From Podarcis melisellensis (Eukaryota), in assembly GCA_964234715.1 (NCBI GenBank), contig OZ174284.1: 64,000 nucleotides of DNA. One strand, 5' to 3'. A program made the position numbers and the translations under genes. Of the stretch, positions 24,706 through 58,300 are shown one piece after another; the first letter of the stretch is position 1; the number at the start of each line of letters is the position of its first letter. The notes beneath the pieces were generated by a model. That model made no database searches and was not told where the DNA came from. It saw only the letters and a program-made list of their open reading frames with translations.

Positions 24706-26842
24706 ACACACTTCTGCACAGAATTCTTCCAAGCCTTCTGATATGTTCCTCTTCTGTATGTATGGATGGTGTTGTTCTTGCTACATAATCAGTGGCACTC
24801 AAACCCTGAACACTGGAAATAGAGGGAATAATGAAAATGCCCAGATAAGACTATACTCACCATGCCTGCAATACTCCCACCTGTAGGAAAGAAAAGGAAG
24901 TCGGGTTTATATGAACACAGAGTATGAACCACAGTGACCACCCATAAAATCCAAAGGGTATAAACTGACCAGCAATGAGAGAACAGGACCATAATTTGAT
25001 AAGTGAACAAACAAGGAAGGGGGGGGGAGGTGATTATGTGTGAGAAACACCAGCTTCCTCAGGGACAAAAGTCACTTACCCAAACTGTGGCCCATAAGGG
25101 TAAACCGATTCCATTTCATTGCTAAAAAAAAAAAAAAAAAAGAGCAAAGGAGAGGCTGAGTTAAGACCAGATAGCCCAGGTTTCACAAGCCCCTTAGCAA
25201 TCGGCAGCATCACAATACAAACATTAGCCACATCATGGCTCAACTTGGTGCTTCTAGATGTTTTGCACAACAGCTCCCAACAGCCACAGCCAGCACAGCT
25301 AGAAATCATAGTGCAAAACATCAGGAAGGCACCAGGTTGGGGAAAGCTAGTGCAGGCTGTCACAGGCAAGAGACAGGTAGGTAGCCATGTTGGTCTGAAG
25401 CAGTCGAAAAAAAATTAAAAATTGTCCAGTAGCACCTTAGAGACCAACTAAGTTTGTTCTGGGCATAAGCTTTCGTGTGCATGCACACTTCTTTAGATAC
25501 TTCTTGAATCTGAAGTCCCTCTAAAAGGGAATGCCTGATTGAGTTCTTTGATAAACAGGCAGCTAACAAGCTGCACAGGAAGAAATGGATGTTGGGAAAT
25601 TGGGAAATGGTTAATGCTGCAATAGGAGCTAATCCCCTAAATTGCACAGGGAATGTTCATAGAGGCTCAGCTCCAAAAATGCACATTTCCTACAACAAGG
25701 CTACGCCCTATGAAATGCGGCTGTGCTTTAGGATCTGAGAAGGGCTTTCACAATTATTAACTTGGTAACAATTTGCCTTCCACAACTAAAAAACAGGAAT
25801 GATGTCAAAGCTCAATGCCTACTAACCGGTTTTACCAAACTAGATTAAGGTGAAAGGTTTACACCTACTCTTGAGAATTGCTACACTGAGAATTTACAAC
25901 CTGTAAAACTGTAACTGTATGTATGTGCCAGTTGTGACTAGTGTTTTATTTTAGGGGCTTTGGAGCCTGTCTAATTAAAGCAAGGGCTGCAAAGTTTTAT
26001 GTCTGGCCTTGAAAGTGGGTTGGGGAGAACTTGCTGGCTTCGGCTGATCAGGAAGTGTGAGAGAAACTGTCTTGACTGCAGCCAGGAGAAATATAGAGCC
26101 AGGCCACTGAGAAATTCAAACTGCCTACAGGCTACAAACAAATCCAACAGGCTCACCTGCTGCTACCCTGCGCACGTCACCCACATAATCCATGAAGTGA
26201 TAGATTGCCCCAGGTGGGCGGTGGGATGACAGGCCGTGTCCTGCAAGATCAATGGCCATGTAGTAACAATCTGAAAGAGAACAAAGGGAAGGGAAACAAG
26301 TCAGGTGCCAAACCACACTCCTGTATAGCATACAGTGGTACCTCAGGTTACATACGCTTCAAGTTATATACGCTTCAGGTTACAGACGCTTCAGGTTACA
26401 GACTCCGCTAACCCAGAAATATCACCTCAGGTTAAGAACTTTGCTTCAGGATGGGAACAGAAATCGTGCTCCAGCGGCGCAGCAGCAGCAGGAGGCCCCA
26501 TTAGCTAAAGTGGTGCTTCATGTTAAGAACAGTTTCAGGTTAAGAACAGACCTCCAGAATGAATTAAGTACTTAACCTGAGGTACCACTGTACTACAATT
26601 TCATTGTATGAAGTTACTTGTGCACCACAACTAACTATTGTTAGCCAGCTGTTCAAATAAAGGAATAAACACAGGACCCAACGACGAATCCTACCTTTGG
26701 GGAGTAAGGGAATGAGCCTGTTGAAAGTGTTTGCATTGTCCAGCCACCCGTGCAAACAGAGGACAGGGCGGCCTTGTGGAGATCCCCATGCCTTGGCTGC
26801 AATGTGGCCCCAGGGGACCATTAACTTCACCTCTGAGATCAT
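15618..26842 (-). CDS. SERHL2: Serine hydrolase-like protein (alpha/beta hydrolase), 305 aa
   Basis: Minus-strand exons 26842-26695, 26270-26157, 25121-25080, 24880-24861, 23613-23539, 20786-20674, 19883-19804, 18688-18654, 18076-18000, 16798-16705, 15737-15618 (918 nt, phases consistent). Motifs [27 protein letters not shown], nucleophile elbow GHSLG, catalytic-His region GNHFVH. Confidence 0.95.
16225..16360. mobile_element. Short hAT-type palindromic MITE
   Basis: CAGGCACCCCCAA...TTGGGGATGCCTG termini with 8-bp TSD GCCTATGC/GCCTATGT. Degenerate relatives near 7800-7925, 25250-25375, 27270-27370, 44690-44785 and 47700-47830. Confidence 0.8.
20341..20560 (+). mobile_element. tRNA-derived squamate SINE
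   Basis: A/B-box-like head (GGGTTCAAATCC), core GAAGCTCACTGGGTGACCTT.GGCCAGTCAC and AATAA tail. Similar copies at ~26935-27130 and ~58315-58528. Confidence 0.7.
21232..21456. mobile_element. hAT-type MITE
   Basis: TAGGGATGGGCGGTATATC...GATATCGCCCAGCCTTA with 8-bp TSD GACAGGAC/GACAGAAC. Confidence 0.8.
22252..23095. mobile_element. Non-autonomous Tc1/mariner element with a GC-rich interior
   Basis: TA-CCGTACTTTTCCGTGTAT...ATACATGGAAAAATATGG-TA. The same terminal sequence occurs in the element at ~42919-43271. Confidence 0.7.
24285..24704 (+). mobile_element. L2-type LINE 3' fragment ending in a (TAT)n microsatellite (~24645-24704)
   Basis: Translates as [39 protein letters not shown], resembling the L2 ORF2 C-terminus, followed by about 20 TAT units. 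Confidence 0.7.
26333..26590. mobile_element. Tigger-like MITE in a SERHL2 intron
   Basis: 19-bp perfect TIR CAGTGGTACCTCAGGTTA / TAACCTGAGGTACCACTG (18 bp shown) with TA flanks. Confidence 0.88.
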
Positions 26843-28569
26843 GTCTGAAATGAAACAACAGGAGCGTCTCCTGGTGATGATAGTGTTACCAGAGAAGGCA
26901 GTCTCACCTATGTCTCATAACCACTGGACACCAAGGCTGATCAGTGTGGCATAATGGTTAGAGTGTTGGACTATGAGCTGGGAGACCAGGGTTTGAATCC
27001 CCAATCACTGGGTGACCTTGGGCCAGTCATACCATCTCTCATTGCAGGATTGTTGTGATAATAAATTGGGGAGGAGAACTATCTGCACCACCTTGAGAGA
27101 AAAGGTGGCATATAAATGTAATAAATAAACAAACAAAAAGTCGATAAACAGATTCTGGCCCCGTGCATCCAGTCACTGAAACAAATATATCAGGCAGCGC
27201 TGGTTTGTCTGACTGGCTGCCTCTTCCCACCCCCTTCAGAAAGATTGTAAAGACTGTGTTTTAAGGCAACATTTGCTAGCATGCTACCCTCCAGGTGTTT
27301 TGTAATGGCTGGGACTGACAGGAGCTGTAGTCCAAAGCACCTGGAGGGTGCCAGGTTAGTGGCGGCTGTTTCAGGGCATGCTTTTAACATTATCTCCCCA
27401 CCTCATGGAACTGAGGGCTTCATGGTGCTACAGTTTCAAGTCATTCTAGTTTTTCAGCATCTATTGTTTGCGATCATTTTATGAGCCCTTATTGTGTATG
27501 ATATACATTGAAATACTCCCCTTTTTTCCTTCCCCTGGGAGAAAAAAAGGAGGGAAGGGTGAATGAGAGAAAGCACACAATGAGACTGACCCTGAACTCT
27601 CCCCTCCAATGGTACAATTGTCTTAGAATGTGGTTGCTCCACTGGTTACACAGCACCACCGGATTCCATAGCACTCTGGTCAAGCATAGTTTCCATTTGG
27701 TCTTTGCTCCTGTCCGGCTTCTGGTCCAGTAGCAGGGGAGGGCAGAGTGACCCTGCTATCATGGTTAGATCAGTTCCCGGTGAAGTTTGGGCTTGCAGTG
27801 ATGCAGGAATGAGGGACCCATTGGGATGGTCTGCCCCTATGGATATTTGGAACCTGACAATGATTAAGTGCTTCTTGACTCAGTGAGTTTCTGCTGCTCT
27901 TCCCCAAAGTTCCAGAAGCTTCTCAACTCATTGCCAGGCAAGGAAACATACAGAAGATGATGGGCTTCCAGGATTAGCTTAAGGCCAAAGGCTGACCCAC
28001 CACACCCCAACAAAATGTCTCTGAGCATGTCAGAGGTGATCAAGAGGAATGGTGCTTGCCTTTCCTGCCTCAGCCAACATGAGCCATCATTCTTTTACAC
28101 TCACCTACTGATGGGGGCTACCAAGTCCAATAATAACAATGATGATAGTAATAATGATAATGATGATGATAATAATTTTATTATTTATACCCAGCCCGTT
28201 TGGCTGGGTTTCCCCAGTCACTCTGGTTGGCTTACAGCAAATACAAAAACACAGTAGAATGTTGCTAGTGACATCTACATTTATGGGATGCTGATGACAT
28301 TTCACAAGTCTCAATATTCAGGGTCTTATTCTGTTTGCAGTGCAGCCTTTGCCCACCACTGGCGCGCACACACACCACAAACGCCATTAGAAAGCAAAAT
28401 TTACTGCACAATTAACCATTTGGAAGGCTTTTCAAGGCTGCCTCAAACCAAAGCCTGGCATTGAGGTGGAACCTTTAGGTGTCTGTTTTGCCCAGGCTCA
28501 CAACTCCCTTCCCACAAGAACCAACGTAGGTGGGAAACAGGACCCCTGCTTCAAAAACCCAGTACATTT

Positions 28570-36639: not shown

Positions 36640-37830
36640 GAGAGAGAGAGAGGCGTCACACGGGCGGGGAGAAGAAGCGGAGTAGGGAAGAAGAAGCCCC
36701 CCTCCTTTGCGTTTCTGAGTAAGGGGGGCAATTGCGAGTTGTCCCTTAAGTGCCCATTCCTGGAACGAGGAACTTGGAGGCCGGTTCCTTGGGCAGCGCG
36801 CAAGCTTCCCGCACGCGACGCGCTGCAAAACTGCTGCACCCCCCGCCCCCCCTCCGCCGGGAAGTCCGCGCGCCGGGAGCTGGAGCTGCGCGTTGCTCTC
36901 GCTCGGAAGAGCTCCGCAGTTCCCAAATCTTACTCTTCATTTGGTTCCTTGTCTTATTTTTTTAATTACTCGATTGGGGGGGGGCGGGACTTTTTTCTCC
37001 CACCCTTCACTGCAAAAAGAAATCGAGAGGTTTGGTGGGGGTTTACCCCCATTAAACAGCCAAAGAGAGGCATTCACAGTTTTGCAAATTGAGTACATTT
37101 CTTTCTCCATGCTCAAACCTTTCAGGGTTCGCCAGCAAGAGGAAAGCCAGCGAAAAGATTCGCCTGCTTTGTAACAAAGTGCAATGAAGTAAGTACGCAA
37201 AGTTCCTTTTGTGTTTTTTTGAGCTGCTTCAGGGAAGAGGGGGCGACTGGAAGCGGAGGTTTTTTTGGGGGGGGGGCTATAGGGAATATCTGGTTCCCCT
37301 ACCAGTTAAGCCACCGACGTCATGAAGGTAAGAGCCAGACTGAAGCTGCAAACTTAACCCCACATACCTGGGAGGAATCCCCATTGAATTCATAAGACTT
37401 ACTAGAGAGTAGCCGTGCTTAGGATCCGGGTGCAAGCAAGTTAAGTTTGGGTCTCCTTGAAATCGAAGGTGCTGATGTTAAATCCTGACTGGGACCCAAG
37501 TTCCATGGACTTAGACTGGATCCAGCCCTATATCTATAACTGACAAAACTGGCCGTTCTCCTAAGTGTTGCTTCTGTTTTCCCGCGCAAGGCTTTCGGAT
37601 CGCTGCCGAAGCACGCAAACGGTGCGCCCGGCTCCCCTCCCGCGCTCGAAGGCGCCCGGGAGCCCACGGAGTCAGCCGCCAGCCCCGCAGACAAAGCGCT
37701 CGGCTGCCCCGGCGCCGCCAAGGCAGGCAGGAATGCCGCGGAAGGATCCGCAGCTGGGACCAATTAGTGTGTGTGGGGGGGGGGGTTCCTGCGAGCTGAT
37801 CTGGCGGCGGGAACCGCGCGGTGGAAAGAG
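36640..37830 (+). promoter_or_regulatory. CpG island; candidate promoter and first exon(s) of the SOCS1-like gene
   Basis: CpG-dense, with GC boxes, a GAS site TTCCTGGAA (36757-36765) and plus-strand donor sites at 37189 (GTAAGT) and 37328 (GTAAGA). The assignment to the SOCS gene is inferred. Confidence 0.55.
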
Positions 37831-40800
37831 ACCTGGTTCCCCCCTTCTGTTTCCCTCCCCCTCCGATGGAAAGCTGTGCTGTTAGTTACCCCTGCCTGCT
37901 TCAAACGGGTTGTTTGAGTCACATCTCGGGAAGGAAGCAGTGGCTAACCTCAAAGCCTTTTTTAATAGCTCCTGGAGATGAAGAGAGACTGCAGAAGTAG
38001 TTAAACAAGAACAGATGTTGGTGTTGCAAACACCGTGCCCTTGATTTAGAAGTCCGGACTTGATTTAGAGCAGCTAACCCTAGAAAGCTGTAGAAATCTG
38101 GTGGCAATCGCCTAATCAAGAAGAGCCCCTGCAGGATCAGGCCCAAGACCAGTCTGGTCCAGCCTCCTGTTCTCGCAGTAGATAACCAGATGCTTATGGG
38201 AAGCTCACAACAAGTAGGGCCTGAGTGCAAGAGATACTCCCCACTTGTGGTTCCTAGTCATTGGGACTCTGCCTTTGGTATTGGGCATGGGTAGGCAAAC
38301 TAAGGCTGGGGACCGGATCCAGCCCAATCACCTTCTAAATCCAGCCTGTGGATGGTCTGGGAATCAGCATATTTTTACATGAGTAGAATGTGTGCTTTTA
38401 TTTAAAATGCATCTCTGGGTTATTTTTTTTTTCCAAAATATAGTCCAGCCCCCCACAAGCTCTGAGGGACAGTGGACTGGCCCCCTGCTGAAAAAGTTTG
38501 CTGACCCCAGGAATTGAAGATAACAGCCATTGTATCTTCCATGGATTTGCCTAACTCTCTTTTAAAGCTGCTGGTTATTTCTGCATTTTTTTAGGAGCCA
38601 ATTCCAATATTCAGCTTCATTGGATGGCTGTGGGTTCTAATACAGTATTACAAAGAGGGTGAGAGAGAGATGCTCTGTGTCCACTTTCTTCATCCTCTGA
38701 ATGGTCTTCCTGGTCGTCTTACCCCAGATGTTTACTTGGAAGAAGGGTCCTCTTTCTTCACTGAGACATATGCCACTTAAGTAAGTATGCATCTGATTGT
38801 TGCTTTAAAGTCTTTGCAATGTGACTTAGAACAGTTGGTGTCGCTTCTGTGCATTGTGCTACCACTTCAGGGGCTCCCACTTGGAATAGGCTTGCTAAAC
38901 CCAGGCTAGTTCACTGGGAGCTCCTTGAAGTTCTTCTTCAAAGCTTAGAAAAGCATAAAATTGGAGCTGGATGGGGCATTGGAGATCCTTTAATCCAGTC
39001 CTGTGCTCGGTGCTGAATTTTGTAACACACGCATCCCTGAGAAATGGCTGCTTAGTATTATCTTGCCATGCCCTGTTTTAAACACATAATCTGCTTCTAT
39101 CAAAGCAAGTGTTCGTTTGTTGGTCACTTGGAAGACTGCTCTTCAGTTGCCAAGTAATCTGAAAATAATTGTAAAATGCAGGTGCTGTAATATAGGGGGC
39201 TGCAACTCGACACATTGTAACTAGTGTTTTTATTCAAAATATAATTATATTTTGAAATCTAGGAATCTCTATGTATGGTAATACTGGATTTGTTGGCAAG
39301 CTCTTGGCTGTAAGCTGGTACTACTGAGTACTACTAAGCTAGTACTAATATTTATGTTGCTTGTGCCTGAGTAATTGCATTATATGACACAAAGGATGGG
39401 ATTGTTTGGAGCAGGAGGTTACCTAATACTACTGCTTAGCACTTGGAATACTGTCTACTGGATGCTATACCTCAAAAGGGGTTTTGTGGAGCTGGAGAAA
39501 GTTCAGAAAAGGGCAACCAAAACAGTCCCCCGTGAGAAGTTAAAATGTTTGCGGATTTTTGGTTTAGAAAACTGATTTGATTGGGGAAAGTGTTTTCTTC
39601 CTCTCTCGTGAAATTAGAGCTGAATCTTGGGGAGATATAGGACGGACAAAAGGAAAGACTTCACAGCACAATTCACTACTACAATGTGACAGTAATGGCT
39701 GCCTCCTTGGATGGCTGTAAAGGCTCCTCCTAGTCAGGATAGCTCTGTTACCTCCAGTATCGGAGCCCATGTGCCTCTGGATACCAATTTATTGGGGAAC
39801 ACAAAAAGTGCCATTGCAGTCATTGTTCAAAACATCCTTCGCCTTTCCTTAAAATGTGCTGTATTGTCAGTATTTTTTGTTATTTTATCTGCATTCCTAA
39901 AATGGTGTTCTAGTCAGAGATGCTCTATGTGCTCCAAAGTGCTTCCGCCCCATTAATGCGGGGGCAAGATGCTAGGAAGGGTTAAGGGAAGGGTGAGATT
40001 TCTTGGGCATGAATTTTGAGGGAGTTCTCCCTTAGTAAAAGATATAATTTGGAGCTGCTATGTTCTGTGTTCCTGTGTGGAAAAAGTGGGGTCATGTGGA
40101 TTTACGAAGTTCGGACTATATCCATTTGGTATAATATTGGTATTTTGAGAGCAGGTGACTAATGAATATGAACATATCTATGTTCTCAAGAGCAGCTGGA
40201 AGGTTGCCATATTTCAAAAAGTAAAATTGTTGAGATTTTTTAAAAAAATAAGCTTTTGAGGGGAAACCTAACCCCAAAACAGTGATATTTTAGGCTGTTT
40301 ACGCTGCTTTTTCCATTGCATTGCCATACATCCGGGTTTTCCCTGACATTTTGACTGTTCGGCAAAATTCCCCGGGCACCATTTTTGTGCCCGAAAACCA
40401 GGACATGTCAGGAATATTCCTGACGTATGGCAAGCATAGAGTAGCACCACTTACCACTTTGCATTAGTTTGTAACAAAATCTGGTCAGTCACAATATGAG
40501 TGTGAGGTGTAATTTGGTGCACTGTTGTTGGTATTAAATAGTTGTTTAACATAGTCCGATGAGGAGTGCTGCATTGTAACCAAAATAGTAGATCCAAATG
40601 CTTTACTTGAATGTTAAGACTCGAAAAACTTAACATTTTGATGAATAAACCATCTTCCATTTTGTTCGGATTGAGAAATAAAACAAATGAACCTCCTTTG
40701 GTTGCATTGGCAACACATTCCTATAATGTTCCTGTTCGGTCCCAGAACTGATGCATAACCCCAAAATTCCTGCATTCCTACCTTGTGCATTGATTCCAGT

Positions 40801-43271: not shown

Positions 43272-43399
43272 TATCTTCAAAACAACCCTGTGAGGTAGGT
43301 TAAGTTGAGAGACAGTAACACACTGAGGTTCCTGAGTGGATATTTGAACCTTGGTCTGCCAAATCCCAGCCTAAGGGCTCACCCACATGGAAGTTTAAT

Positions 43400-43599
43400 N
43401 NNNNNNNNNNNNNNNNNNNNNNNNNNNNNNNNNNNNNNNNNNNNNNNNNNNNNNNNNNNNNNNNNNNNNNNNNNNNNNNNNNNNNNNNNNNNNNNNNNNN
43501 NNNNNNNNNNNNNNNNNNNNNNNNNNNNNNNNNNNNNNNNNNNNNNNNNNNNNNNNNNNNNNNNNNNNNNNNNNNNNNNNNNNNNNNNNNNNNNNNNNN
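43400..43599. other. Assembly gap (200 N)
   Basis: Run of N. Confidence 1.
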
Positions 43600-43960
43600 G
43601 TAACATTTTAAAAATAAAATGCCTTGAATGTGTCTTCAGTAACAACCGGTGAAAAGAGAAGGCCACATCCTTTCCTTGGGGTTGATGGAAACACTATGGA
43701 AGTAAAGGGTGTGGCAACAGAAAAACATCACTACACATTTAAACAACGCCCGCAATGCACAGTGTGTTCACGGGCAAGTAGCATGTGGTCTTACACTGTG
43801 CATTGCGGGCGTTGTTTAAATGTGTAGTGATGTTTTTCTGTTGCCACACCCTTTACTTCCATAGTGTTTCCATCAACCCCAAGGAAAGGATGTGGCCTTC
43901 TCTTTTTCACCGGTTGTTACTGAAGACACATTCAAGGCATTTTTATTTTTAAAATGTTAC
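43600..43960. repeat. Near-perfect long inverted repeat abutting the gap
   Basis: Arm 43600-43765 is the reverse complement of 43793-43960 except for two homopolymer-length differences; 27-nt loop. Confidence 0.95.
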
Positions 43961-45060
43961 TGTTGGGCAGAAGTGCTGTTGCACAAAACAGCTGTATTAA
44001 ATAATAATAAAGCAGCTCCAGATCCTTTCCTGGTTTGAAGCAACATACACTAAAAAACAAACAAACAGAAGTTTGCTCTTCTTTGCAAATCTAGTATATC
44101 TTCAGAGCAAGAATTACATTTTAAAAAATATGGGCAAACTACTTGGAGCAACACAGACACATTTTAAACTTGCTTTTACTGCTCTTTAGTGCAAATCTGG
44201 CATATTATGTATTAGGTTGTTTTTTAGTCTTGGGTCTATATCAGTTTTTAATGTTTGTCAGTCACTTTGAGTTCATTTTTTCAAAGTGACATAATAATAG
44301 TATAAATGTGGGTCCAGTTCATTTATTACGATTTCACAAGCAATCTGTGCCTTTTGTCAACACCTGCAGTTGGAAGTATACTGTTTCTAAATAGTTTTAA
44401 AGGCACTGAAAATAAGTTTTAATAAAATATTTTATTGTTTATTTCTTTACACCATGATATGAGACGTTAAGAAAAGAGTTTGATGGTTCTTGGAAATGTG
44501 GAGAAATTGTTCTGAAATGTGTGTTAAAATTCCAAAGGACAGTGGAAACTTCAAATTCTGCCAGAAACTGGGAGTGGGGCAGTTATGAGCTATTTTGGTA
44601 CAATTCATAACTATTGTTAGTCATGCCAGAACACTGAAGGCAACCATGTTGAAATAATCATTCTTTGCTGCCATTTGCTGCAAGAGACTAACATGGCTGC
44701 TTTCCCACCTGGTACCCATCAGATGTTTATGACTTAAACTCCTATTGTCCCCAGTCATCTGAAGGGCACCAGGTTTGCAAAGCAAGTGTGGACTTCTGGG
44801 GTAGGGAAATAAACTACATACTAGTGCTCCCCAACTTTCTATTTGTTTGGTTTTTACAGTGGTATTTTGATACAGCTGCTTCTGTCTTTGATATGCCATT
44901 GCTTACCTTCAATTCATCCCTTTTGCCCAAGTAAGGGCCCAGAACTTACCCTCTCATTTGTGTGTGTGTGTGTGTGTATTCGCAGGACTGAATATAAAGA
45001 CAGTGGTGGCATCTTCCTGTGATTTGCAGGCTTTCTGAGAGATGATCGGAGAGAAGGCAG

Positions 45061-45621
45061 ATGAACAAACTCGGCAGCTTTTCCGCTTCACAGAGGCAAC
45101 ACCAAGAGTCTCCTTTTAGCCCAACATCAACCAGATTGCTGTCTCACTACCGTGCATTTCGTGATCGTGAATGGGAAGTGGTGGAACGGTCGCTTGGCCT
45201 CCTGCAGGCCAGTGGATTTTACTGGGGCCCTTTGTCTGTTCATGAGGCCCATGCTAGGTTACTGCAAGAGCCGGTGGGGACCTACTTGCTGCGAGACAGC
45301 TCTCAGGGAAACTGCCTTTTCAGCCTCAGCGTCCGCATGCCGTCTGGACCCGTCAGCCTCCGGATCTCTTTCAGCAAAGGCTACTTTTGGCTGAAGGACT
45401 GGTTTTCGGACTGTGTACTGAGGTTGCTTGAACTAGTGGTGGCGGGAACCAGGACTAAACCCCTCCACTGTGATGCAATGGGAGAAGCTCCTCTAGTATT
45501 TTCTGAGCCCCTCTGCAGGGAGCATAGGGCTGTGCCCACGCTGCAGGAACTCTGCCAACGCGCCTTATCTGCTTCCAGCAGGACTGGGCGGGGCAGTTGT
45601 TGGACTCTACCTCTTCGTTGA
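45061..45621 (+). CDS. Suppressor of cytokine signaling 1-like protein (KIR-like, SH2, truncated SOCS box), single coding exon, 186 aa
   Basis: [76 protein letters not shown] parallels human SOCS1 ([50 protein letters not shown]). Candidate acceptor CAG at 44983-44985. The start codon is uncertain. Confidence 0.9.
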   Translation: [186 protein letters not shown]

Positions 45622-48600
45622 CAACAGAAATGCCAAAATGGGGGGGGGCAAAAATATGCAAATATTGATGACGCCAATGCGCTAACAGAATGAGTCATTG
45701 CTTTTCCTGCTTTCTTAGGGTCTGTTTCAATTTCCTTTTATAGGCTAGAGGTAAACATTGCCTTTCATCCGCAACTTGGTATTCCAGCTGCCTAAGCCAG
45801 TCTTTCCTGATGGAACATTGAAACTTGGTTTCAGAGATCTGATGCTGAGATAGGACTTAGTGTGTAGAAGTTGAATGCTGATCTCTAGAACCAGAGAGGC
45901 ACTGCTCTGTGTATATGGGAGATTATTGGAAAACTTAGGCTGCTAACACTTACCTGCGAGTAAGCTTCATTGAACTCAACAAAACTCACTTTGAGTTGAC
46001 ATGTAGAAGATAGCACTGTTATACTTGCAACCAAGCCTTCTTCTCAGTGGGGCAGGTTCAGCAGTGTCTAGCTTTCTCCTCCATGCATCTCCCTAAATTC
46101 TCTTTCCCACTGGGTACTGTCCTCATTGTGTCAGGGTAGGAAATAGAAGGCTTTTATTTTAGCACTTCCCAGCAACTCCATTATTTGGCTTAAGATTAGC
46201 ATTATTTTATAAGAAAAATGTGAGTCTTTAATACAATAGTTGAGATTATTGTATTTGGTGAGTCACACTTGTGGAAAAATGGAGGAATTTAATGAAGATT
46301 AAAAAGAATCTATATCAGATTAAAGTAAAACCAACCAACCCCCCACTACCTAAAACAAGTGGTAGCCAGTGTACAAGGGATTCAGTCGAGAATAAGAAAT
46401 GAAAAAGGTGCATATTCAGAGTAAAAGGGTAAATAGAGGTTTTCACTTGTTCCAGGCTTACTCAGACTATAATCTTGTACCCGCTTGCCTGGGGACAAGC
46501 CCCATGGAACTCAGATTGAACATCCATGTAGACTTACTATATAGGATCACAGTATAATAATATTTTAGTAATTGTCTTAATCTGCAGTAATTAAAAAAGG
46601 TGCCTGAAAAGCATTTAATGGTATTTATTTAGCGAGTCTTGTAAAAAAGTGTGCTGCTGTCATTCAGTGGGGGAGAAATGGGAAGAACTCTTCATTAAAT
46701 GTGTTCATCCTCCTTTTTGTACAGCAGTATTTTCATAAAAGTGAACTCAATTACTGTAATGTATTGACTTCTGCAGTTTTGTTATATGTAGACTGTTTGC
46801 AGCATCTGGATATATAAGTGTATTAGTGGTGAATCTGGATTTTGGAAACCATAACATGGTTTTATGCTCATGATTTATGCCACTTGATTAAAATTAACAC
46901 AGTTGTTTGGGGCATTTTCATGGCTCCTGCTACAAACAAAGGAGTACAGCAGGAGGCTTGGAGAAGCATATCGAGAAGAGCCATCTGAGCAGCATCTTCA
47001 AAATTCAGGGCGACACTGGGACTAGCCTAGGATGGAATTTCTTACTTCAGTGGTCTGCATAGAATGATGGGTGTAAGAGCACCAGAGGCCTGCTATTCCA
47101 CCATCCTGTTCTCAGTGGCCAAACAGATGCCTACATGATCCACAGACCCCTTCAAATCTCTGGGGTCGTTCAAGACTTAGTCATACATTACTTAGAATAG
47201 GCCCATTGGGATCAATGGGATTAAAGTTAGTCATGACCTGCTTAAGTGTCGTTGATATCAGTAGGTCTACTTTAAGCATGGCTAATTCTAAAACCAACTT
47301 TTGTCACCCGTACACTTACCTGGACGCAAACCTCACTGAACTCAGTTGGAGTTGCATCCGAGTAAACATGCATAGGACTTCACTGTTGTACCATTCAAAT
47401 CAAGGACAGATACCGACCGGAATAAATGTATCCTTTTAGAACGCTGATTGAAAGATGACCATCTTTCGCAGGAGCCAAAAAACCAATGGAGAAGGCAACT
47501 GTCTGATATGTAGTGGGAAGGAGTTCCAAAGGGCACATTATGCGGAACAGGCCTCCGGATCAGATGGTATCTGCAGAACTCAGTGGTTGGCTGGGGATGA
47601 GACAATCTCTTAGGTATCCTGGTCTCAAACTGCATAGGGCTTTTTACACCAGCACCTTGAACCTAGGCCTAATCAACGACTGAATTTTTAGATCCTTTGC
47701 TGCAGCAATGGGGAACCTGAAGCCCATCAAATATGGTTGGTTTACAACTCCCATCATCCCAGGCTGGCTGGGGCTAATGGGATTTAGAGTCCAACAAAAA
47801 CTAGAAGACCACAGATTCCACAGCCAAGGAATGCCTTCCCATCATATGTCAAATAAGCAACTACAGTATCTGACTTTTAGAAGACATCTGAAGGCAGCCC
47901 TGTTTAGTGAAGTTTTTAATGGTTGATGTTTTATAGTGTTTTTAATACTCTGTTAGGAACCGTCCAGAGTGGCTGGAGAAGTGTGTAGGCTTGTTATAAC
48001 TTCACTCTTAAGTATCCTGGCAGCTAATTTACAAAGAGAAATAGAAAACTGTTATGCAGTGCCCCCTTGTGAGTGCATATGCCACACAGTCTTATCTACG
48101 GAGTGTCTTACACCTATCTCCTGCCTCTGTTACATTTGAATGGAAACTTCTCCTCCTGATGGCTTTAATTACAATTTATTAGCAACAGCAAACTTTTGAT
48201 ACAGATCAGGGTAGGAAATAATAGCTGAAAAAGTTGTGAGGATTTTGCGGGTCTATCTTTATTTCTAGCAGTTCATTGTGTTAAGCGAATGTGACAACTT
48301 GAGCGTCGGTTCTTGGAGCATACTGAATTTGATTTTAAGGTGCCATCGCTGTAATCTGATGTTGAAAGATCTTGACAGGCTGCAATAAATAGTTGCCTCT
48401 GCAAAATGACATCAGCTGCCTTTGCATTTAATTGGAAAATAGATATTCTTAGTGGCTGCATGTTTACCCGAGCATGAGCATCTTCCAGAGCTAGTAGTTA
48501 TTGGCTGTGATATCTTTTGGTGGACAGGGTTCAGCAAGCGGAGATTGTCTTGTGGCAGGCCACCCCAATCCCCATGCGGTGCAAGATTCTAGGGGTTCCA

Positions 48601-52300: not shown

Positions 52301-55300
52301 AGAGATCCTAGTTGCCAGAGGATCATTTCGTCCTGCCTCCTGCAATGCAGCAATCTCAACTAAAGCATCTCTGACAGGTGGTCATCCAACCTCTGCTTAA
52401 AAACCTCCCAGGAAGGAGAGTTCACCACCTCCTCAGGGAGTTCGAGTTCAGATCCTGAAAACAAATTGCTAGACACACAGTGTGTTCACCCTGTTCTTTA
52501 ATTCTAACTCTATCTTTTGTACCTGTCTCCAGCTGGTGGAGCTTTGGATTCTTGTAAAAAGCTAAGTAGATCTGACAACTTGAAGTCCATCCACCCGTGG
52601 TGTACACTCCTCTATTGTCAGACTACTCAATCTGTTGTCATCTCACTCCAGTTCAGAGATGGTAATACAGTGGTGCCCCGCAAGACGAAATTAATTCGTT
52701 CCGCAATTTTTGTCGTCTAGCGAATTTTTCGTCTTGCGAAGCACGAAATCCCATAGGAATGCATTGAAAATCAATTAATGCGTTCCTATGGTCAAAAAAG
52801 GTCTAAACAAAGCCAAATTTGGTACAACAACAGTTTATTAACTGCTCTTTAAAGTCACACATACTGTAAAGAGCAGTTCAAAAACTGAAGGGAAAATAAA
52901 TTAACTTTATAAACAAAACATGTCTTTGTTTTTAGACGTCGTGAGACGTTTTCGTCTTGCGAAGCAAGCCCATAGGGAAAATTCGTCTTGCGAGGCAAAT
53001 CGAAAACGGAAAAACCTTTCGTCTAGCGAGTTTTTTGTCTTGCGAGGCATTCGTCTTGCGAGGTACCACTGTATTTGCATCCTTCTTACAGGCTGCTCTA
53101 GGCTATGGGCAGATGTTGCCAAAGTATAGATGACTGAGCAACTTTTCTCAATCTTGATAACTGTAAAAAAATTATATTTTCCTCATCTACCAGGGACTCT
53201 CCACGTGTATAATGACCGTCTAATCAAGATTGCTTTTGCCAATGAAGAAATTAATGCACTCTGCAAAACAAACATAATGTATAAACCAGATTATACAAAA
53301 TTCATCCTTAGCTATTATCGGATTGACTCGGAAAGCAAGGAGATCACAGTCATGCAATCTCTACAGTCTGTGGAAATTCCTCCCGGTCGTGAGAACCAGT
53401 CAGAGACATTAAATTATCCATTTAAAATAAAGCCTTCTATGCATTCCTCTGTTTCTGGTACCTACTACTGCAAAGCTCTTTGGACACTTAAAAACCAAGT
53501 AAGAAGGGGAAATGGGACATTTATCCTTTTCAGAGGTAAGTTCTTGAAGGCAAGTCAGCGGTGGTGGGTTGAACAACAACCGGGGGTGGGGCAGGGGTGG
53601 TCAATCTTGTGTAAAGGCATTTAAAACTTTAGCTACCTTTATTTGAATGTATACTATAAGCAGACAAATTACAATGTCTAATTGCAAACAAATCACAAAC
53701 TCTTAAAGACCAACTCATTTATTCTGATGTAAGCTTTCATGGACTAGCAAATAGGTATGAGGCTTTGAGTTCCTTGAAGGAAAAATGGGATATAGATTTA
53801 AAACAATGAGCCTTGGCTCCCAGTTACCGCTTATCTGCATGTTTGGCTTTCCTCATTTTCTTGCAGAAAAAGGATATACAGAGCCCCCTCTTACCATGTG
53901 GCTGTGCCTTATCACCATCACCATTATTTTAACTGTTGCAAGCATCATGGGAACTGTCCTTCTGTTCTGGAAGAGAGAGGCAAGTAATTCTTACTTAACA
54001 TCGTGTTGTATTTGCTACAAAATGCAAAAAGTTTTGCAGCATCAGCCACTCAGTAGTGCTGAATATTAAAGTCAGTTACAAAATGCTTGGAATGAGGGGT
54101 TCTACTGATTAAAAAAAAATCTTACTTGATTAATCAAATTTTAATTTATTAAGATTGAGTTGATTAATCAATTAAATCTACATATGTTTGCATGTGGCTA
54201 ACATAACAGTTCTGGAGAAAAATGCATTATTTCTTTGTCTGTAGAAAGTGAGTATACAGGCATCATCTTATCATCTTCAAGAGGGACCCCACCCTCCTAT
54301 GGGAAACGGATGTTCCCTACCATCTGCAGTTTTATATACATATACATAACATTTTAATTCATGTGAAAAAACATATATTTAATTATTGAAGTGTTTCCTA
54401 ATCAGTAATGCCTTTTTGGTCTATGAAAAAATTGTGTATAATAAAAGTACCTGAACTTTTACTTAATTGAAGATTGCAGCCCTGTTTGGAGCAGAAATTG
54501 ATTATGTGTTGGCTACTTGGCCAGCAATAAAAATTCGTACTGTTTGTAAACCAAGAGAGTTCATATCATAGCACTGTTATGAGTATCTGTATGAGTATCA
54601 TAGTACTCATAACATAGTGCCAGTTTGTGGGCTTCTGGTCGGCCACTGAGAGAACAGGATGTTGGACTAGATGGGACCAGAGGGGCCATTGGCCTGACCC
54701 AGCTGGCTCTTATCCTCATACTTCCCTTATCCTGAATAGTGGGAAGTCCTAGACAGCCTTTACAAGGTCAGTGTGTTCTTTGGAAGAGAAAACACTGCAG
54801 GCTTAGACTTGTGGTAAATTTGTGACAAAATGTCTGCAGATTTGAAGGTTGATACTTATATTGTATTATTTATTAAATTTTGAACCTGCTCTTCCTCCCA
54901 AAGGAACCCAGGGTGGCAAACATCATACAACACAACGCAATAAAATTATAATAAAAGCATATTCAAATCATTTAAAAACAATTGGAAACATCAAAAACCA
55001 CTAAGAACATTAAAAAAAAGGAAAATGGCCACATGCCTCACGGTTAATTTCAAGGTTATCAGGAGCAGTATATTTCGGCTATTTAAATGCTTGTGTGAAC
55101 AGTAATGTTTTAAAATTCTTTTTTAAAGTTAATAAGGAGGGTGATGAAGGTATCTCACCAGGCAGAACATTCCAGAAATGGGGAACAAGCACCAAGAAAG
55201 CCTTATCATGTGTGAGCTCCAACTGGGCAGCACCCAGCACCACCAACAGAGCCTGCCAATCATATGGCCTGAGTTGGTTGATATTGGGCAGACCCTCTTT

Positions 55301-58300
55301 TACTTACTTGGGTCCCAAGCCATTTGGAGCTTTATATGCTAGAATTTACACCTCGATTTGGGCCTGGTAACTCAATGATAATTCAAAAGCAAGCGTGCAC
55401 ACCCAGTGCTAATCCCACTGACAACCTGGAAGGTGGAGATGACTGACTCGCACTTCCATTGCTTTGAATGGGATATTAGATTTCCCATTGACCTCCATCA
55501 ATATGCCTACCGTAAGGAAGTTTTAGCTGCAACGGACAGTCAGATGCCCTTGTGCTTCTGTAATAGTTCTGGGGCATTGCCTCTGAACTCAAAGGTCATT
55601 ATGTGGACAGTTCCTAAGCTTTGGTTTATTATTCACATCACAAAGGGATAGCTGTATTCAAAATCCTTTCAACTCCTTTGAAAGGTACAACCTTTCTTCT
55701 TCCTAACTCTTTACATGTTGAATTTATGCTTTGCCATTTATTCCCATTCATCGTATCCTCACAAATTTGTGGTGTGGCCTCAGTGGAGACAGATCAAGAA
55801 GTGCCCTGCTCAGAGGCCGGCCCCTCCACACACTTCAGGCAGCTCAGAACCTCCAGAGCCCTCATATGTTGTGAGTATTACTGTATATCAAGAATGACTT
55901 TTTGTAGCAGCCCTATTCAGAAGCCATTAAGTGTAACATGGTAGAGGCTCAGGGGGATGAATCCACTGCAAAGTTCTGCAGAGAGGGAGGTTTACTATGT
56001 CTAGCTGTACGTGTGAAGGTTCCCTCTCTGTAGACCAGGGTTTCTCAAAGTGGTCGATATTGAACCCACCCCCTGCAGGGGTTGAAGGGACTATCCAGGC
56101 ATTGGGAAAAGACCTAGGGGTCAAAAGGGGCCTGGAGTGGGAAAGAAATGTATGAGGTACAGTGTGAAAAATTTAAGAACTATGAGCCTCAGAAATAAAT
56201 GACATGAGCATGTACAGAGTGTACCCCCCTTGCTCTTCTGAACAACACTGAAAAAGGTTGATCACCAAAGAACATGGTGACTTACAGTAAGACTCTAATT
56301 CATAAACCTGCAGCCCAATATTCACATGTTTGCTAAAGCCCATCAGGTTTCTCACTGGAGAGTATGCTGTATATATTATTTTCACAGAATCATAGAATTG
56401 TAGAGTTGGGACCCCAAGAGTCATCTTGTCCAGCCCCTTGCAATGCAGAAATCTTAGCTAAAGCAACCATGTTTAGCTAGTAGATAATCATAATGCTACT
56501 AGATAATTCTGCAATGATTAACGCATCAACTCTGTCATTGAAAAGGAACTTCATATTCACTTTCTATTACCAGGTCTTTCCTGTCAATTCCATCCCTTAA
56601 AAGAGGGATATATGCTATATTACTTAGTAAGCAACAGAGACGAAGAAAAGCGTCTTGGGCATCTTGAATAAATGCATCTTCAAATTTGTTACGTATTGTT
56701 GAAAGCTGAAGTGCTCTGAGCCATTGAAGATAAAACAGTAGAAAGCCATGCAGCTGTGCAAGAGGAAAATTGCTCTTATGACCTGGGTGGGAAATAGAGT
56801 TGAGCCGAGATTTGGATTAGATGCTTTTGGAAGTTGTATTCTATCCTTGACTATTAGATGCATGAGCAATAGGTTTTAATTACGGTTTATGGTTACCAGT
56901 CAATTCAAAGGGTGGTTGTTAAAGGTATCATTTCATCTTTCCTCTTGCTGGGAGAAAAGATGCACAGGGCATACTGTCATTTGATATCATGCTTTAAAAT
57001 AACAGCTGAGACTCAAAGAACAGAGAAGGAAACTTTTATCTAGTTTTGTCAGGTCTGGGGTGCTGGCAACTGTCAGGAAAAAGGCAAGAGCTGTAAACCA
57101 CAAGTTAGGAATTGGACACAGTGAATATTGCCATGCCTCATGAAAAGTCCCAGCTAGAACAGGAAGCCTGTACAGGCCTTTCTAGTCAGGGGCTACCAGT
57201 GGGCAGCCTGGGTGAAAAGAGGAACTTCAGGGCAAAAGCAGCTTTCGCTTCCCAGCAGGTGGGACTTATTGGGGGGGGGGGAGACTGTGGGGAGGTGGGC
57301 ACAGGGCAAACATAGCAGTGAGAACACCCAAATGGCTGTTCTTACAATACTAAAAAGGCCTTGGGCTGTTCCTCAATGCACCTCTCTTCTCTCTTGGGGT
57401 TCACACCATGTTTTAGCTATCCCTTGCCTTCCCTACTTCTGTAATATCCCCCCGTTATGTTGCTACCTACTGCAGTGGTGAGATCATCTTTCATTTAGTT
57501 AATTCACATCCTCTGTCAGTTTAGGGTAGTGCTGGTGTGTTCATGGCTGCAGTCCCACCTAATAAAAAACTTCCCGTCAAGCCTAAATCCAGCTGACTGT
57601 TATTTGGGGGTCCTTTCATCTATGCCCCCCCATTTTTCTCTCTTCCTGCCTTTTCCCATCGCAGTCACAGAAGGAGAATTGATTCTTGGACAATGCTGTG
57701 CGTTATCAGTTTGTTTTGAAGTGAGTGGTGGGAAACAGAGTTTGACAATTTGTTCTTTTCCTCTTGCTGCGTCACTGAGCCTTGCAAATCCTGCACGTTC
57801 CCCGTTCTTCTGTTAATGCCACCTGTCTTCCCGCATGCTGAAGCTCCTCCCACCATCCTGTTGCTAGGGGAACTGCCACCACGACCATGGCAACCTGCCG
57901 TTACCATAAACACACATAAGTGCTGTTTTGGGTGCCTTTTTTAGATAAGAGACTTAACATCAATACATCTGACATACATATTTAGTGGCAAGATGTTTCA
58001 TCTCTTTGCTTGTGCTTATTTGCAGACTCGGTTTCTCAGTTCTGGGTATTCTGAGGCGCTGCCTGGGGAGTGTAAAGAGCAGACCCCCCTTCTTCTCCAG
58101 CCTTTCTTAGTGATAACTAGGAGGAGCCTAAGCATGGCTATTGCGTTCTTAAGGCAATTGTTGGGATTAAGCGTAGGGTGGAGTATTCTGCTGTATTTCC
58201 AAAAGATAAAAAACTGGATCAGCTAATCCATTTTTCTTTTAATCACCTAAGCTGCAATCTTAAAACGCATTTACCAGGGAGTAAACCACTGCTGGGCAAT

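Follow-up and report, generated by a model that had tools for sequence, protein, structure and literature searches.

A SOCS1b ortholog beside NFAM1 in the lizard Podarcis melisellensis with a conserved KIR-ESS-SH2 module and a truncated SOCS box

Background

The KIR of SOCS1 is by itself enough to inhibit the kinase (SOCS1-JAK1 structure 6c7y). An engineered mouse allele of SOCS1 reportedly retains KIR and SH2 without a working SOCS box, and mice with this SOCS-box-deleted SOCS1 are said to keep most SOCS1 function. A second gene of the SOCS1 type was named SOCS1b in 2R vertebrates by Wang et al. (2019, PMC6368001), who proposed it as a 2R-derived SOCS1 duplicate and gave no synteny of its locus. 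In mammals as in reptiles, represented by green anole and Burmese python, the same study reports a single SOCS1, and its text mentions neither NFAM1, Cul5 nor a truncated box, neither marsupials nor platypus. Chicken papers use the name SOCS1L in expression studies (PMC8119446, PMC11795593), and chicken SOCS1L is vaccine-responsive in thymus (PMC8119446). The reverse primer of a published qPCR assay (PMC11795593) encodes EWEVLER, which comparison with the emu sequence identifies as a motif of the SOCS1-like clade. As papers and genome annotation already include a second ancient SOCS1-type gene, its existence is no discovery in itself.

In this study, we analysed a window of 64,000 nucleotides from Podarcis melisellensis (GCA_964234715.1, contig OZ174284.1), in which an earlier note had pointed to a SOCS1-type gene. 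We show that this ORF is a genuine, selectively maintained second SOCS1-type gene and an ortholog of SOCS1b (SOCS1-like, SOCS1L). We correct the distribution of SOCS1b, which is present in reptiles, birds, marsupials and monotremes and apparently missing in placentals only. Moreover, we describe a pattern of domain loss in which the module for direct JAK inhibition is conserved and the ubiquitin-ligase part is dispensable.

Results

The ORF and its domains

The SOCS1b (SOCS1-like) coding exon is one intronless ATG-to-TGA ORF of 186 codons plus the TGA stop at 45061..45621 on the plus strand, exactly where the earlier note had placed it. Its best PDB matches by phmmer are SOCS1 (6c7y_B, E=7.5e-26; 6c5x_D, E=1e-22), followed by weaker matches to SOCS2 (~1e-16) and SOCS3 (~1e-14), and Pfam recognises an SH2 domain (E=2.4e-6). 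The AF2 model of the ORF superposes on 6c7y_B with a TMt of 0.89 and an rmsd of 1.6 A, and the top Foldseek matches of the model are all SOCS SH2 structures.

All motifs that had been named for this ORF are present, each on the plus strand. The KIR (S-H-Y-R-A-F-R, residues 28-34, 45142..45162) aligns to T-H-F-R-T-F-R of 6c7y_B, and its F33 is invariant among 62 aligned SOCS1 and SOCS1-like sequences. It is followed by the ESS helix (residues 35-51, 45163..45213), which AF2 models as a helix with a pLDDT of 85-91, and by the SH2 domain (residues about 52-135, 45214..45465). Within the latter, the motif GTYLLRDS contains the phosphotyrosine-binding Arg78, which like D79 and S80 does not vary among the same 62 proteins. 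The BC box, the Elongin B/C-binding helix 1 of the SOCS box, was assigned by pattern match to residues 159-169 (45535..45567); residues 160-169 follow the pattern [STAP]LxxxCxxx[LIVAM], and residues 161-174 are predicted to be helical (AF2). The family-invariant residues of KIR, SH2 and BC box are all intact. Of the features that mark the KIR-bearing type II SOCS proteins (SOCS1/SOCS3-like), SH2, KIR with ESS and BC box were thus found, and the Cul5 box with the C-terminal helix was not.

Truncation of the SOCS box

The ORF had been described as intact and of SOCS1 architecture. It is intact only as far as halfway through the SOCS box, where it ends with LPLR* at the position of the Cul5 box, and Pfam gives no SOCS_box match in it; the architecture is that of SOCS1 in KIR, ESS, SH2 and BC box, and the description went too far for a protein that lacks the C-terminal half of this last box region, the SOCS box. 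DNA alignment to the Lacerta agilis locus (L001) places the L-P-L remnant of the Cul5 box, followed by R and the TGA stop, at 45607..45621 (plus strand). At 45619-45621 the window reads TGA versus TGG (Trp) in Lacerta agilis, which continues for 25 more codons; Zootoca and Podarcis muralis also have Trp here, and the TGA of the window could be a polymorphism or an assembly error. The 25-codon stretch cut off by the TGA lies in another frame in geckos, agamids, turtles and crocodiles and has no counterpart in birds or mammals. The former tail, now 3' UTR (45622..45700, plus strand), carries the lacertid-specific frame QQKCQN...ANALTE. Two short nucleotide blocks within it are conserved in squamates, turtles and a crocodile, in different frames or behind a stop depending on the lineage.

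The ending LPLxPxLxKY[IV]EEFPFKI is matched in six of seven anamniote orthologs, the seventh (Narcine) being one substitution off, and the pattern scan found this anamniote-type ending in none of about 60 amniote orthologs. Among canonical SOCS1 proteins, 80 of 118 match the pattern for the Cul5-box/terminal-helix ending. In Chelonia a stop lies inside the BC box, and as judged from sequence SOCS1b of cryptodire turtles stops there. A pattern scan of 1.6 kb, starting about 110 bases upstream of the stop, found no downstream SOCS-box exon. A tblastn search with 11 SOCS-box C-termini against 10 amniote loci of +/-10 kb (E up to 20) gave nothing consistent; every match had an E above 0.6, and strand and position were scattered. 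The finch loci contain the string KLPLPPSL at 10909-10932, with nothing SOCS-box-like after it.

The 5' region

The ancestral start codon (45042..45119, plus strand) is the homolog of the one at which the protein begins (MIRGRP/MVGGR) in turtles, birds, platypus and skate. According to the upstream alignment and translations, this ATG is out of frame in squamates and opens a 25-codon uORF that overlaps the main ATG; such an overlapping uORF could lower SOCS1b translation in squamates. A candidate splice acceptor for a non-coding 5' exon, tgatttgcag, lies at 45020..45029 (plus strand), and nucleotide conservation with gecko begins at 45010 (blastn). This candidate exon is modelled on the gene structure given in PMC6368001.

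Phylogeny, age and selection

The window ORF is 96% identical to the SOCS1-like protein of Lacerta agilis (P0001), a RefSeq protein whose name bears out the expected database label, 94% identical to that of Zootoca, and about 66-71% identical to bird SOCS1-like proteins; identity to lizard SOCS1 is just 37-46%. In an ML tree (LG+C20, 64 sequences), SOCS1-like and canonical SOCS1 form two clades separated at 100/100. Chondrichthyans stand at the base of both and each extends to amniotes; sharks, a ray, lungfish, a caecilian and a frog fall in the SOCS1-like clade. The window ORF groups with Lacerta and Zootoca at 100/98, within the SOCS1-like clade and outside canonical SOCS1, and the amniote stem branch has a length of 0.73. 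The proposal of an ancient SOCS1 paralog, as opposed to a recent retrocopy, is thereby upheld. The tree comprises the two clades without SOCS3, SOCS2 or CISH, none of which was among the relatives retrieved by word search, so that each paralog clade serves as the root of the other and the closest relationship to SOCS1 rests on the PDB scores and on Wang et al. 2019. On this tree, the SOCS1b duplication is older than the divergence of cartilaginous from bony vertebrates. A proposed paralogon that links 16p13, 22q13 and 17q25 is the argument for an ohnolog origin, and origin of SOCS1b by whole-genome duplication (2R) is plausible.

A canonical SOCS1 exists separately beside the SOCS1-like gene in Zootoca (P0084 against P0002), as well as in Varanus, Lerista, Phrynocephalus, Sphenodon, Pelusios, Dromiciops, Macrotis, Rhinatrema and Pelobates.

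Among sauropsids, dN/dS of the KIR-ESS-SH2 core is 0.07-0.15 (NG86) and that of linker plus BC box 0.10-0.28. A GY codon model gives an omega of 0.137 for sauropsids and 0.123 for all taxa, which is purifying selection and far from a value of about 1. Between the window and Lacerta the core differs by 12 synonymous and 6 non-synonymous changes (omega 0.15). In marsupials the KIR-ESS-SH2 module has a dN/dS of 0.07-0.19 versus 0.6-0.8 in the tail.

Distribution

SOCS1-like orthologs were found in lacertids, geckos, skinks, varanids, iguanians, tuatara, turtles, crocodilians and birds, and in seven marsupials, platypus and echidna. The gene had been suggested to be retained in this reptile and lost in mammals. 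It is indeed retained, a statement that undersells a gene carried by essentially all sauropsid groups; its loss in mammals is wrong as stated, given the orthologs in the seven marsupials and both monotremes. Eutherians are the sole mammal group without a SOCS1-like match in the word search. The koala ortholog of SOCS1b carries the NCBI label 'SOCS3-like'.

The locus

The placement of the gene between an SERHL-like hydrolase and NFAM1 is confirmed. Downstream, an NFAM1 immunoglobulin-domain exon lies at 53193..53537 on the plus strand (Pfam Ig_NFAM1, E=1.2e-13), which the NFAM1 part of P0051 also matches by tblastn (E=4e-19). A further NFAM1 exon at 55760..55876 (plus strand) matches residues 165-202 of the fused Salvator model P0009 (tblastn, E=5.5e-5); Pfam has no match there. 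Upstream, alpha/beta-hydrolase (SERHL-like) exons at 26128..26914 on the minus strand were located by motif scan. Since their Pfam matches are weak (Hydrolase_4 and Abhydrolase_6, E about 0.04), the SERHL identity comes from the called 435-aa hydrolase gene on the minus strand of the collinear Lacerta agilis locus, where the order hydrolase, SOCS1-like, NFAM1 is found.

Adjacency to NFAM1 extends beyond lacertids. In Phrynocephalus, an agamid, NFAM1 lies 7 kb downstream of the SOCS1-like gene, and fused SH2+Ig_NFAM1 gene models in two passerines (Zosterops, Pitangus) and a tegu (Salvator) imply the same neighbourhood. Within +/-10 kb of the SOCS1-like loci of Geospiza, Camarhynchus, Dromiciops, Macrotis, Notamacropus, platypus, skate, Gekko, Emydura, Chelonia and Crocodylus there is no other called gene. 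In a subset of these +/-10 kb loci, tblastn with pieces of the window found no NFAM1 or hydrolase exon, NFAM1 being too divergent for a word-based search. A blastn comparison of 38-49 kb with eight loci gave almost no conservation beyond the coding exon.

Discussion

The data make it probable that the window holds the lacertid ortholog of SOCS1b, a gene adjacent to NFAM1 in sauropsids, which keeps KIR, ESS and SH2 under selection, has lost the Cul5 half of its SOCS box and acts as a JAK inhibitor uncoupled from Cullin-5. Judged from its domains, SOCS1b is most likely a KIR/SH2 JAK inhibitor of this kind. Its SH2 and ESS would dock on JAK kinases or phosphorylated receptors, as in SOCS1, and the KIR would block the JAK substrate groove and thereby damp JAK-STAT signalling; cytokine inducibility is likewise to be expected. 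SOCS1b would not assemble a Cullin-5 ubiquitin ligase, and Elongin B/C may remain a partner of the BC-box helix that sauropsids have retained. Loss of the Cul5 box and of the last helix presumably dates to the amniote stem. The remaining tail then appears to have drifted through frameshifts, nonsense mutations and lineage-specific extensions, of which the TGA in the window would be one.

An intronless coding region, an ORF that a nonsense codon makes shorter than its closest orthologs and the missing Pfam SOCS_box match are also what one could expect if lizard SOCS1 had recently given rise to a processed retrocopy or pseudogene that inserted by chance beside NFAM1. However, canonical SOCS1 is likewise a single coding exon (PMC6368001), the identity to lizard SOCS1 of only 37-46% and the separate 100/100 clade with sharks, lungfish and amphibians do not fit a recent copy, and neither does a core omega of 0.137 nor a locus occupied by the same gene in agamid, tegu and passerines. 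As the ORF is not nested in SOCS1 of its own lineage in the ML tree and its omega is not near 1, we reject this origin and grant it practically no probability. A milder form of degeneration would have SOCS1b decaying in this lizard, with the TGA as first step of pseudogenisation and the conserved core reflecting a recent loss of constraint. The change from TGG to TGA relative to Lacerta, with Trp also in Zootoca and Podarcis muralis, and the overlapping uORF in the start region would suit it; the 25 codons removed are a lacertid-specific tail, though, the core omega between window and Lacerta is 0.15 (12 synonymous versus 6 non-synonymous differences), and the family-invariant residues of KIR, SH2 and BC box are intact, which leaves ongoing decay very improbable.

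Two further readings concern what SOCS1b does. It might be a complete SOCS-box E3 adaptor, with the missing part encoded by a downstream exon absent from annotation or replaced in the tail by a diverged sequence of equivalent function. The Ensembl model of Podarcis muralis (P0014) splices to a mini-exon ending in ...LFQFPFIG, and in the window a polypyrimidine tract and an AG precede GLFQFPFIG*, encoded at 45719-45748; the tails of gecko, agamid, skink, turtle and crocodile, moreover, share a short C/H-V-A-x-K motif in frame. The FPF string, however, occurs in two lacertid loci only, in T-rich sequence and with no usable GT donor in the window, and we judged GLFQFPFIG* as a SOCS-box end to be a chance match. 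The search with SOCS-box C-termini found nothing consistent within 10 kb downstream in any of the 10 amniote loci, and the recurring tail motif is out of frame in lacertids and lies behind a stop in Chelonia; we regard a hidden complete adaptor as highly unlikely. Alternatively, SOCS1b could serve as a dominant negative or a decoy, in competition with SOCS1 over JAKs or Elongin B/C, and thereby prolong signalling instead of braking it. Its docking surfaces are kept (KIR, ESS and SH2, in sauropsids also the BC box) and the ligase-recruiting part is gone, and constraint on the BC box persists in sauropsids despite the absent Cul5 box. Since the KIR suffices in SOCS1 and box-deleted SOCS1 reportedly keeps most of its function in mice, an intact KIR predicts inhibition and not relief, and we consider the decoy unlikely.

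Returning to SOCS1b as an inhibitor uncoupled from Cullin-5, a wider proposal for amniotes seems to us on balance correct, if held with more reserve: amniote SOCS1b would be naturally 'ligase-uncoupled', a pure pseudosubstrate JAK inhibitor shaped by a single loss of the Cul5 half, stepwise decay of the box and loss of the gene in placentals. Strong purifying selection would have continued to act on KIR, ESS and SH2 for about 300 million years, in sauropsids as in marsupials and monotremes. The BC box would have decayed to different degrees: most sauropsids keep it, marsupials have it in mutated form, platypus lacks it and in cryptodire turtles a stop cuts it off. The whole gene would afterwards have disappeared in placentals. 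A ligase-uncoupled SOCS1b of amniotes is described neither in PMC6368001 nor in other literature found. It would provide a natural experiment on a long-standing question, the share of SOCS1 function that needs the SOCS box, and it suggests that chickens, lizards and marsupials, among them model species of immunology and regeneration, have a JAK-STAT regulator that has gone unstudied.

Among described genes, SOCS1b of Wang et al. 2019 (PMC6368001) belongs to the same orthogroup as the window ORF and has the same proposed origin as an ancient SOCS1 duplicate; it went undetected there in reptiles and mammals and was detected here in both. Canonical SOCS1 (6c7y with JAK1, 6c5x with Elongin B/C) shares with the window ORF the KIR H-[FY]-R-x-F-R, the ESS helix, an SH2 with FLVRDS-type Arg, the BC box and the single coding exon. 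It differs in the first aromatic residue of the KIR, which is Phe in SOCS1 and Tyr in the window ORF; the latter also has a short unconserved N-terminus, no Cul5 box or terminal helix, and a different neighbourhood (NFAM1, SERHL-like hydrolase). SOCS3, the other KIR-bearing SOCS protein, has the same domain order, but its PDB score against the window ORF is 55.8 bits versus 94 for SOCS1. The reported SOCS-box-deleted SOCS1 of the mouse is likewise a SOCS1-type protein with KIR and SH2, and amniote SOCS1b looks like its natural counterpart. That allele is engineered, whereas the truncation of SOCS1b is evolutionary and appears to have been stable for roughly 300 million years. Most sauropsids have lost part of the SOCS box and retain its BC box; in cryptodire turtles the truncation is complete.

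SOCS1b encodes a SOCS1-type protein

SOCS1b (alias SOCS1-like or SOCS1L) is encoded by a 186-codon open reading frame (ORF) running from ATG to TGA at 45061-45621 on the plus strand, exactly where the earlier note had placed it. The top PDB sequence matches of the ORF are SOCS1 structures (6c7y_B, the SOCS1 chain of the SOCS1-JAK1 complex, E=7.5e-26, 94 bits; 6c5x_D, SOCS1 with Elongin B/C, 1e-22), followed by SOCS2 (~62 bits), SOCS3 (~56 bits) and, below these, SOCS6 and SOCS4. Pfam detects an SH2 domain (E=2.4e-6) and no match to the SOCS_box family in the ORF. An AlphaFold2 model built from a 62-sequence alignment (mean pLDDT 77.6; 85-96 across residues 31-130) comprises an ESS helix (35-51), an SH2 fold and a helix spanning the BC box (161-174). 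Its top Foldseek matches are SOCS structures only, with 6c7y_B as the closest superposition (TMt 0.89, rmsd 1.6 A, 40% identity). The KIR, S-H-Y-R-A-F-R, occupies residues 28-34; F33 and the phosphotyrosine-binding Arg78 within GTYLLRDS are invariant among 62 SOCS1 and SOCS1-like proteins, and motif comparison places the BC box at residues 159-169. KIR, phosphotyrosine-binding arginine and BC box, all named from the first reading, are thus real by motifs and alignment. The SOCS1 architecture claimed there extends to KIR, ESS helix, SH2 and BC box; its completeness was overstated, as the Cul5-box half of the SOCS box is missing.

The SOCS box is incomplete in amniotes

In shark, ray, lungfish, caecilian and frog, the orthologs finish with a highly conserved, canonical Cul5 box plus a terminal helix (LPLxPxLxKY[IV]EEFPFKI). 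This pattern closes six of seven anamniote orthologs, the seventh (Narcine) having the same ending with one substitution, and a pattern search found it in none of ~60 amniote orthologs. Amniote tails past the BC box are variable in length and unrelated between major groups; the tail reading frame of lacertids differs from that of geckos, agamids, turtles and crocodiles, and nucleotide conservation with non-squamate amniotes ends at ~45555, at the BC box. Neither scanning for the pattern nor permissive tblastn searches with eleven SOCS-box C-termini revealed a consistent downstream SOCS-box exon within 10 kb 3' in ten amniote loci. The candidate 'GLFQFPFIG*' (45719-45748), used by one Ensembl Podarcis model, is chance-like and absent from all non-lacertid lineages.

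The BC box itself (L-x-x-x-C-x-x-x-L) is kept in squamates, pleurodire turtles, crocodile and birds. Marsupials have the key leucine replaced or the motif eroded, and platypus retains no recognisable box. The green sea turtle (Chelonia mydas) has an in-frame TAG within the box (…VVPKL*ELC…; locus L011, 10511-10513). Annotated proteins of Mauremys, Pangshura and Chelydra likewise stop at 170 aa, and the pleurodires Emydura and Pelusios read through, so that the stop looks like a cryptodire-specific SOCS-box loss. The window protein terminates L-P-L-R-TGA; Lacerta agilis has TGG at this position, followed by 25 more codons, a single G-to-A difference in a tail conserved among lacertids only. Judged from these sequences, amniotes as a whole lack the ligase-recruiting SOCS-box half, a loss that selection tolerates and that is shared well beyond this lizard.

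Two short nucleotide blocks (...ATGTGTGGCAGGCAAAA... and ...CTAAC[TA]GAATG...) are conserved in squamates, turtles and crocodile ~100-200 nt 3' of the BC box (window 45625-45700, plus strand; loci L007, L008, L009, L010 and L011 of relatives). Since they are read in differing frames by lineage and lie after the stop in Chelonia and the window, they suggest an RNA-level or DNA-level element rather than a protein motif. The first block is interrupted by a nine-G run in the window.

SOCS1b is an ancient paralog retained in marsupials and monotremes

A word-index protein search with the ORF collected 82 relatives. SOCS1-like proteins were found in squamates (Varanus, geckos, skinks, tegu, Anolis, an agamid), tuatara, turtles, crocodile, dozens of birds, seven marsupials, platypus, a caecilian, a lungfish, a frog, one shark and two rays; eutherian matches were canonical SOCS1 only. 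Identity of the ORF to canonical lizard SOCS1 is just 37-46%. A search seeded with Varanus SOCS1 retrieved canonical SOCS1 throughout vertebrates, and both genes are present in Zootoca, Varanus, Lerista, Phrynocephalus, Sphenodon, Pelusios, Dromiciops, Macrotis, Rhinatrema and Pelobates.

In a maximum-likelihood tree (IQ-TREE, LG+C20+F+G4 by PMSF; 64 sequences, 197 columns) the SOCS1-like and SOCS1 clades are split with 100/100 support, the cartilaginous fishes being basal in each and both broadly tracking the species tree. The window sequence clusters with Lacerta and Zootoca (100/98), and the sampled teleost 'SOCS1b' (Clarias) nests within canonical SOCS1. This chondrichthyan base of two fully supported clades places the duplication before the last common ancestor of jawed vertebrates. 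The proposal of an ancient SOCS1 paralog is thereby borne out, and a recent retrocopy of lizard SOCS1 is ruled out by the separate 100/100 clade reaching from cartilaginous fish to amniotes. The age of the split fits a whole-genome-duplication origin; the proposed 16p13/22q13/17q25 paralogon would point the same way. The amniote SOCS1-like stem is long (0.73 substitutions per site), to which unalignable tails kept in the trimmed alignment may contribute; a very long branch (0.84) of deviant composition leads to platypus.

The earlier note had the gene lost in mammals as a whole, which is wrong. A search seeded with the Dromiciops protein returned 66 proteins, from seven marsupials, platypus, echidna (P0194), sauropsids, a caecilian and a lungfish, and none from a eutherian, despite eutherian proteomes being the most densely sampled. 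The gene therefore persists in monotremes and marsupials, and annotated placental proteomes apparently lack it.

SOCS1b is under purifying selection

Coding DNA was obtained for ten loci by exact protein look-up. Over the core (residues 27-169), the window sequence has a Nei-Gojobori dN/dS of 0.15 relative to Lacerta (12 synonymous, 6 non-synonymous differences); the corresponding values are 0.09 for Gekko, 0.12 for Phrynocephalus, 0.09 for Emydura and 0.07 for Crocodylus. Under a Goldman-Yang codon model, omega is 0.137 in seven sauropsids and 0.123 across all ten taxa. The dN/dS check proposed at the outset thus yields values far below 1. In three marsupials, omega is 0.07-0.19 for KIR-ESS-SH2, 0.22-0.40 for the BC-box region and 0.6-0.8 for the tail. 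SOCS1b is kept by selection acting on the KIR-ESS-SH2 module.

Neighbouring genes and 5' region

Alpha/beta-hydrolase exons lie upstream on the minus strand (e.g. 26128-26914); an NFAM1 Ig exon (53193-53537, plus strand; Pfam Ig_NFAM1 E=1.2e-13) and an additional NFAM1 exon (55760-55876, plus strand) lie downstream. The Lacerta agilis chromosome locus (L001) is collinear with the window across non-coding DNA, its called genes being hydrolase (minus), SOCS1-like and NFAM1 (plus), which identifies the window as DNA of a lacertid near Lacerta and Zootoca. Same-strand NFAM1 adjacency is seen directly in the window, Lacerta and Phrynocephalus. In Salvator (P0009), Zosterops (P0051) and Pitangus (P0195) it is implied by independent gene models joining a SOCS1-like SH2 to NFAM1 exons, the NFAM1 part being an Ig domain or an ITAM-like YENNSTAIYENI tail. 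These fusions are probably annotation read-through, and could conceivably be real SOCS1L-NFAM1 chimeric transcripts. No further gene is called in the 10-kb flanks of the finch, turtle, crocodile, marsupial, platypus and skate loci.

From skate to birds an ancestral start is shared (MIRGRP in turtles, crocodile and birds; MVGGR in platypus and skate). In lacertids and gecko this ATG is present out of frame, opening a 25-codon uORF (45042-45119, plus strand) that overlaps the annotated start codon (45061) and may lower main-ORF translation; the agamid has lost this ATG. A candidate splice acceptor (45028-45029, plus strand) fits a non-coding first exon. A (GT)n microsatellite (44962-44980) immediately precedes the candidate acceptor region, ~80 nt 5' of the coding exon; a run of N (~43390-43600), an assembly gap or masked stretch, lies ~1.5 kb upstream of the gene. 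GC content of the window peaks at 36000-38000 (0.516), where the minus-strand hydrolase gene has its 5' end, so that a CpG-island promoter may lie here; a non-coding SOCS1b first exon ~7.5 kb upstream could use it as well.

Discussion

An ancient second SOCS1-type gene is not novel as a concept. Wang et al. 2019 (PMC6368001) propose a whole-genome-duplication origin on grounds other than paralogous chromosome blocks; NFAM1, Cul5, truncation, marsupials and platypus are unmentioned in their text. Chicken 'SOCS1L' (GeneID 417978) is listed with the vaccine-influenced innate immune genes of the thymus (PMC8119446). Published qPCR primers for chicken SOCS1L include a reverse primer encoding EWEVLER, a motif of the SOCS1-like clade by comparison with the emu sequence (PMC11795593). 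No functional study of SOCS1b/SOCS1L was found in the literature. The most interesting remainder of our finding is the amniote-wide loss of the ligase-recruiting SOCS-box half, together with gene loss apparently restricted to placentals.

The retained and constrained BC-box helix of sauropsids suggests continued Elongin B/C binding, perhaps for stability; in cryptodire turtles and mammals this helix is clearly dispensable. A decoy or dominant-negative role of SOCS1b is conceivable. As the JAK-inhibiting parts are conserved and the Cullin-5-recruiting part is gone, which would leave no ubiquitin-ligase activity, SOCS1b is most likely a stoichiometric, ligase-free JAK-STAT brake. The conserved parts would be those that SOCS1 uses for direct JAK inhibition: on the model of the 6c7y structure, the SH2/ESS of SOCS1b would dock on a JAK kinase or phosphorylated receptor, with its KIR filling the kinase substrate groove.
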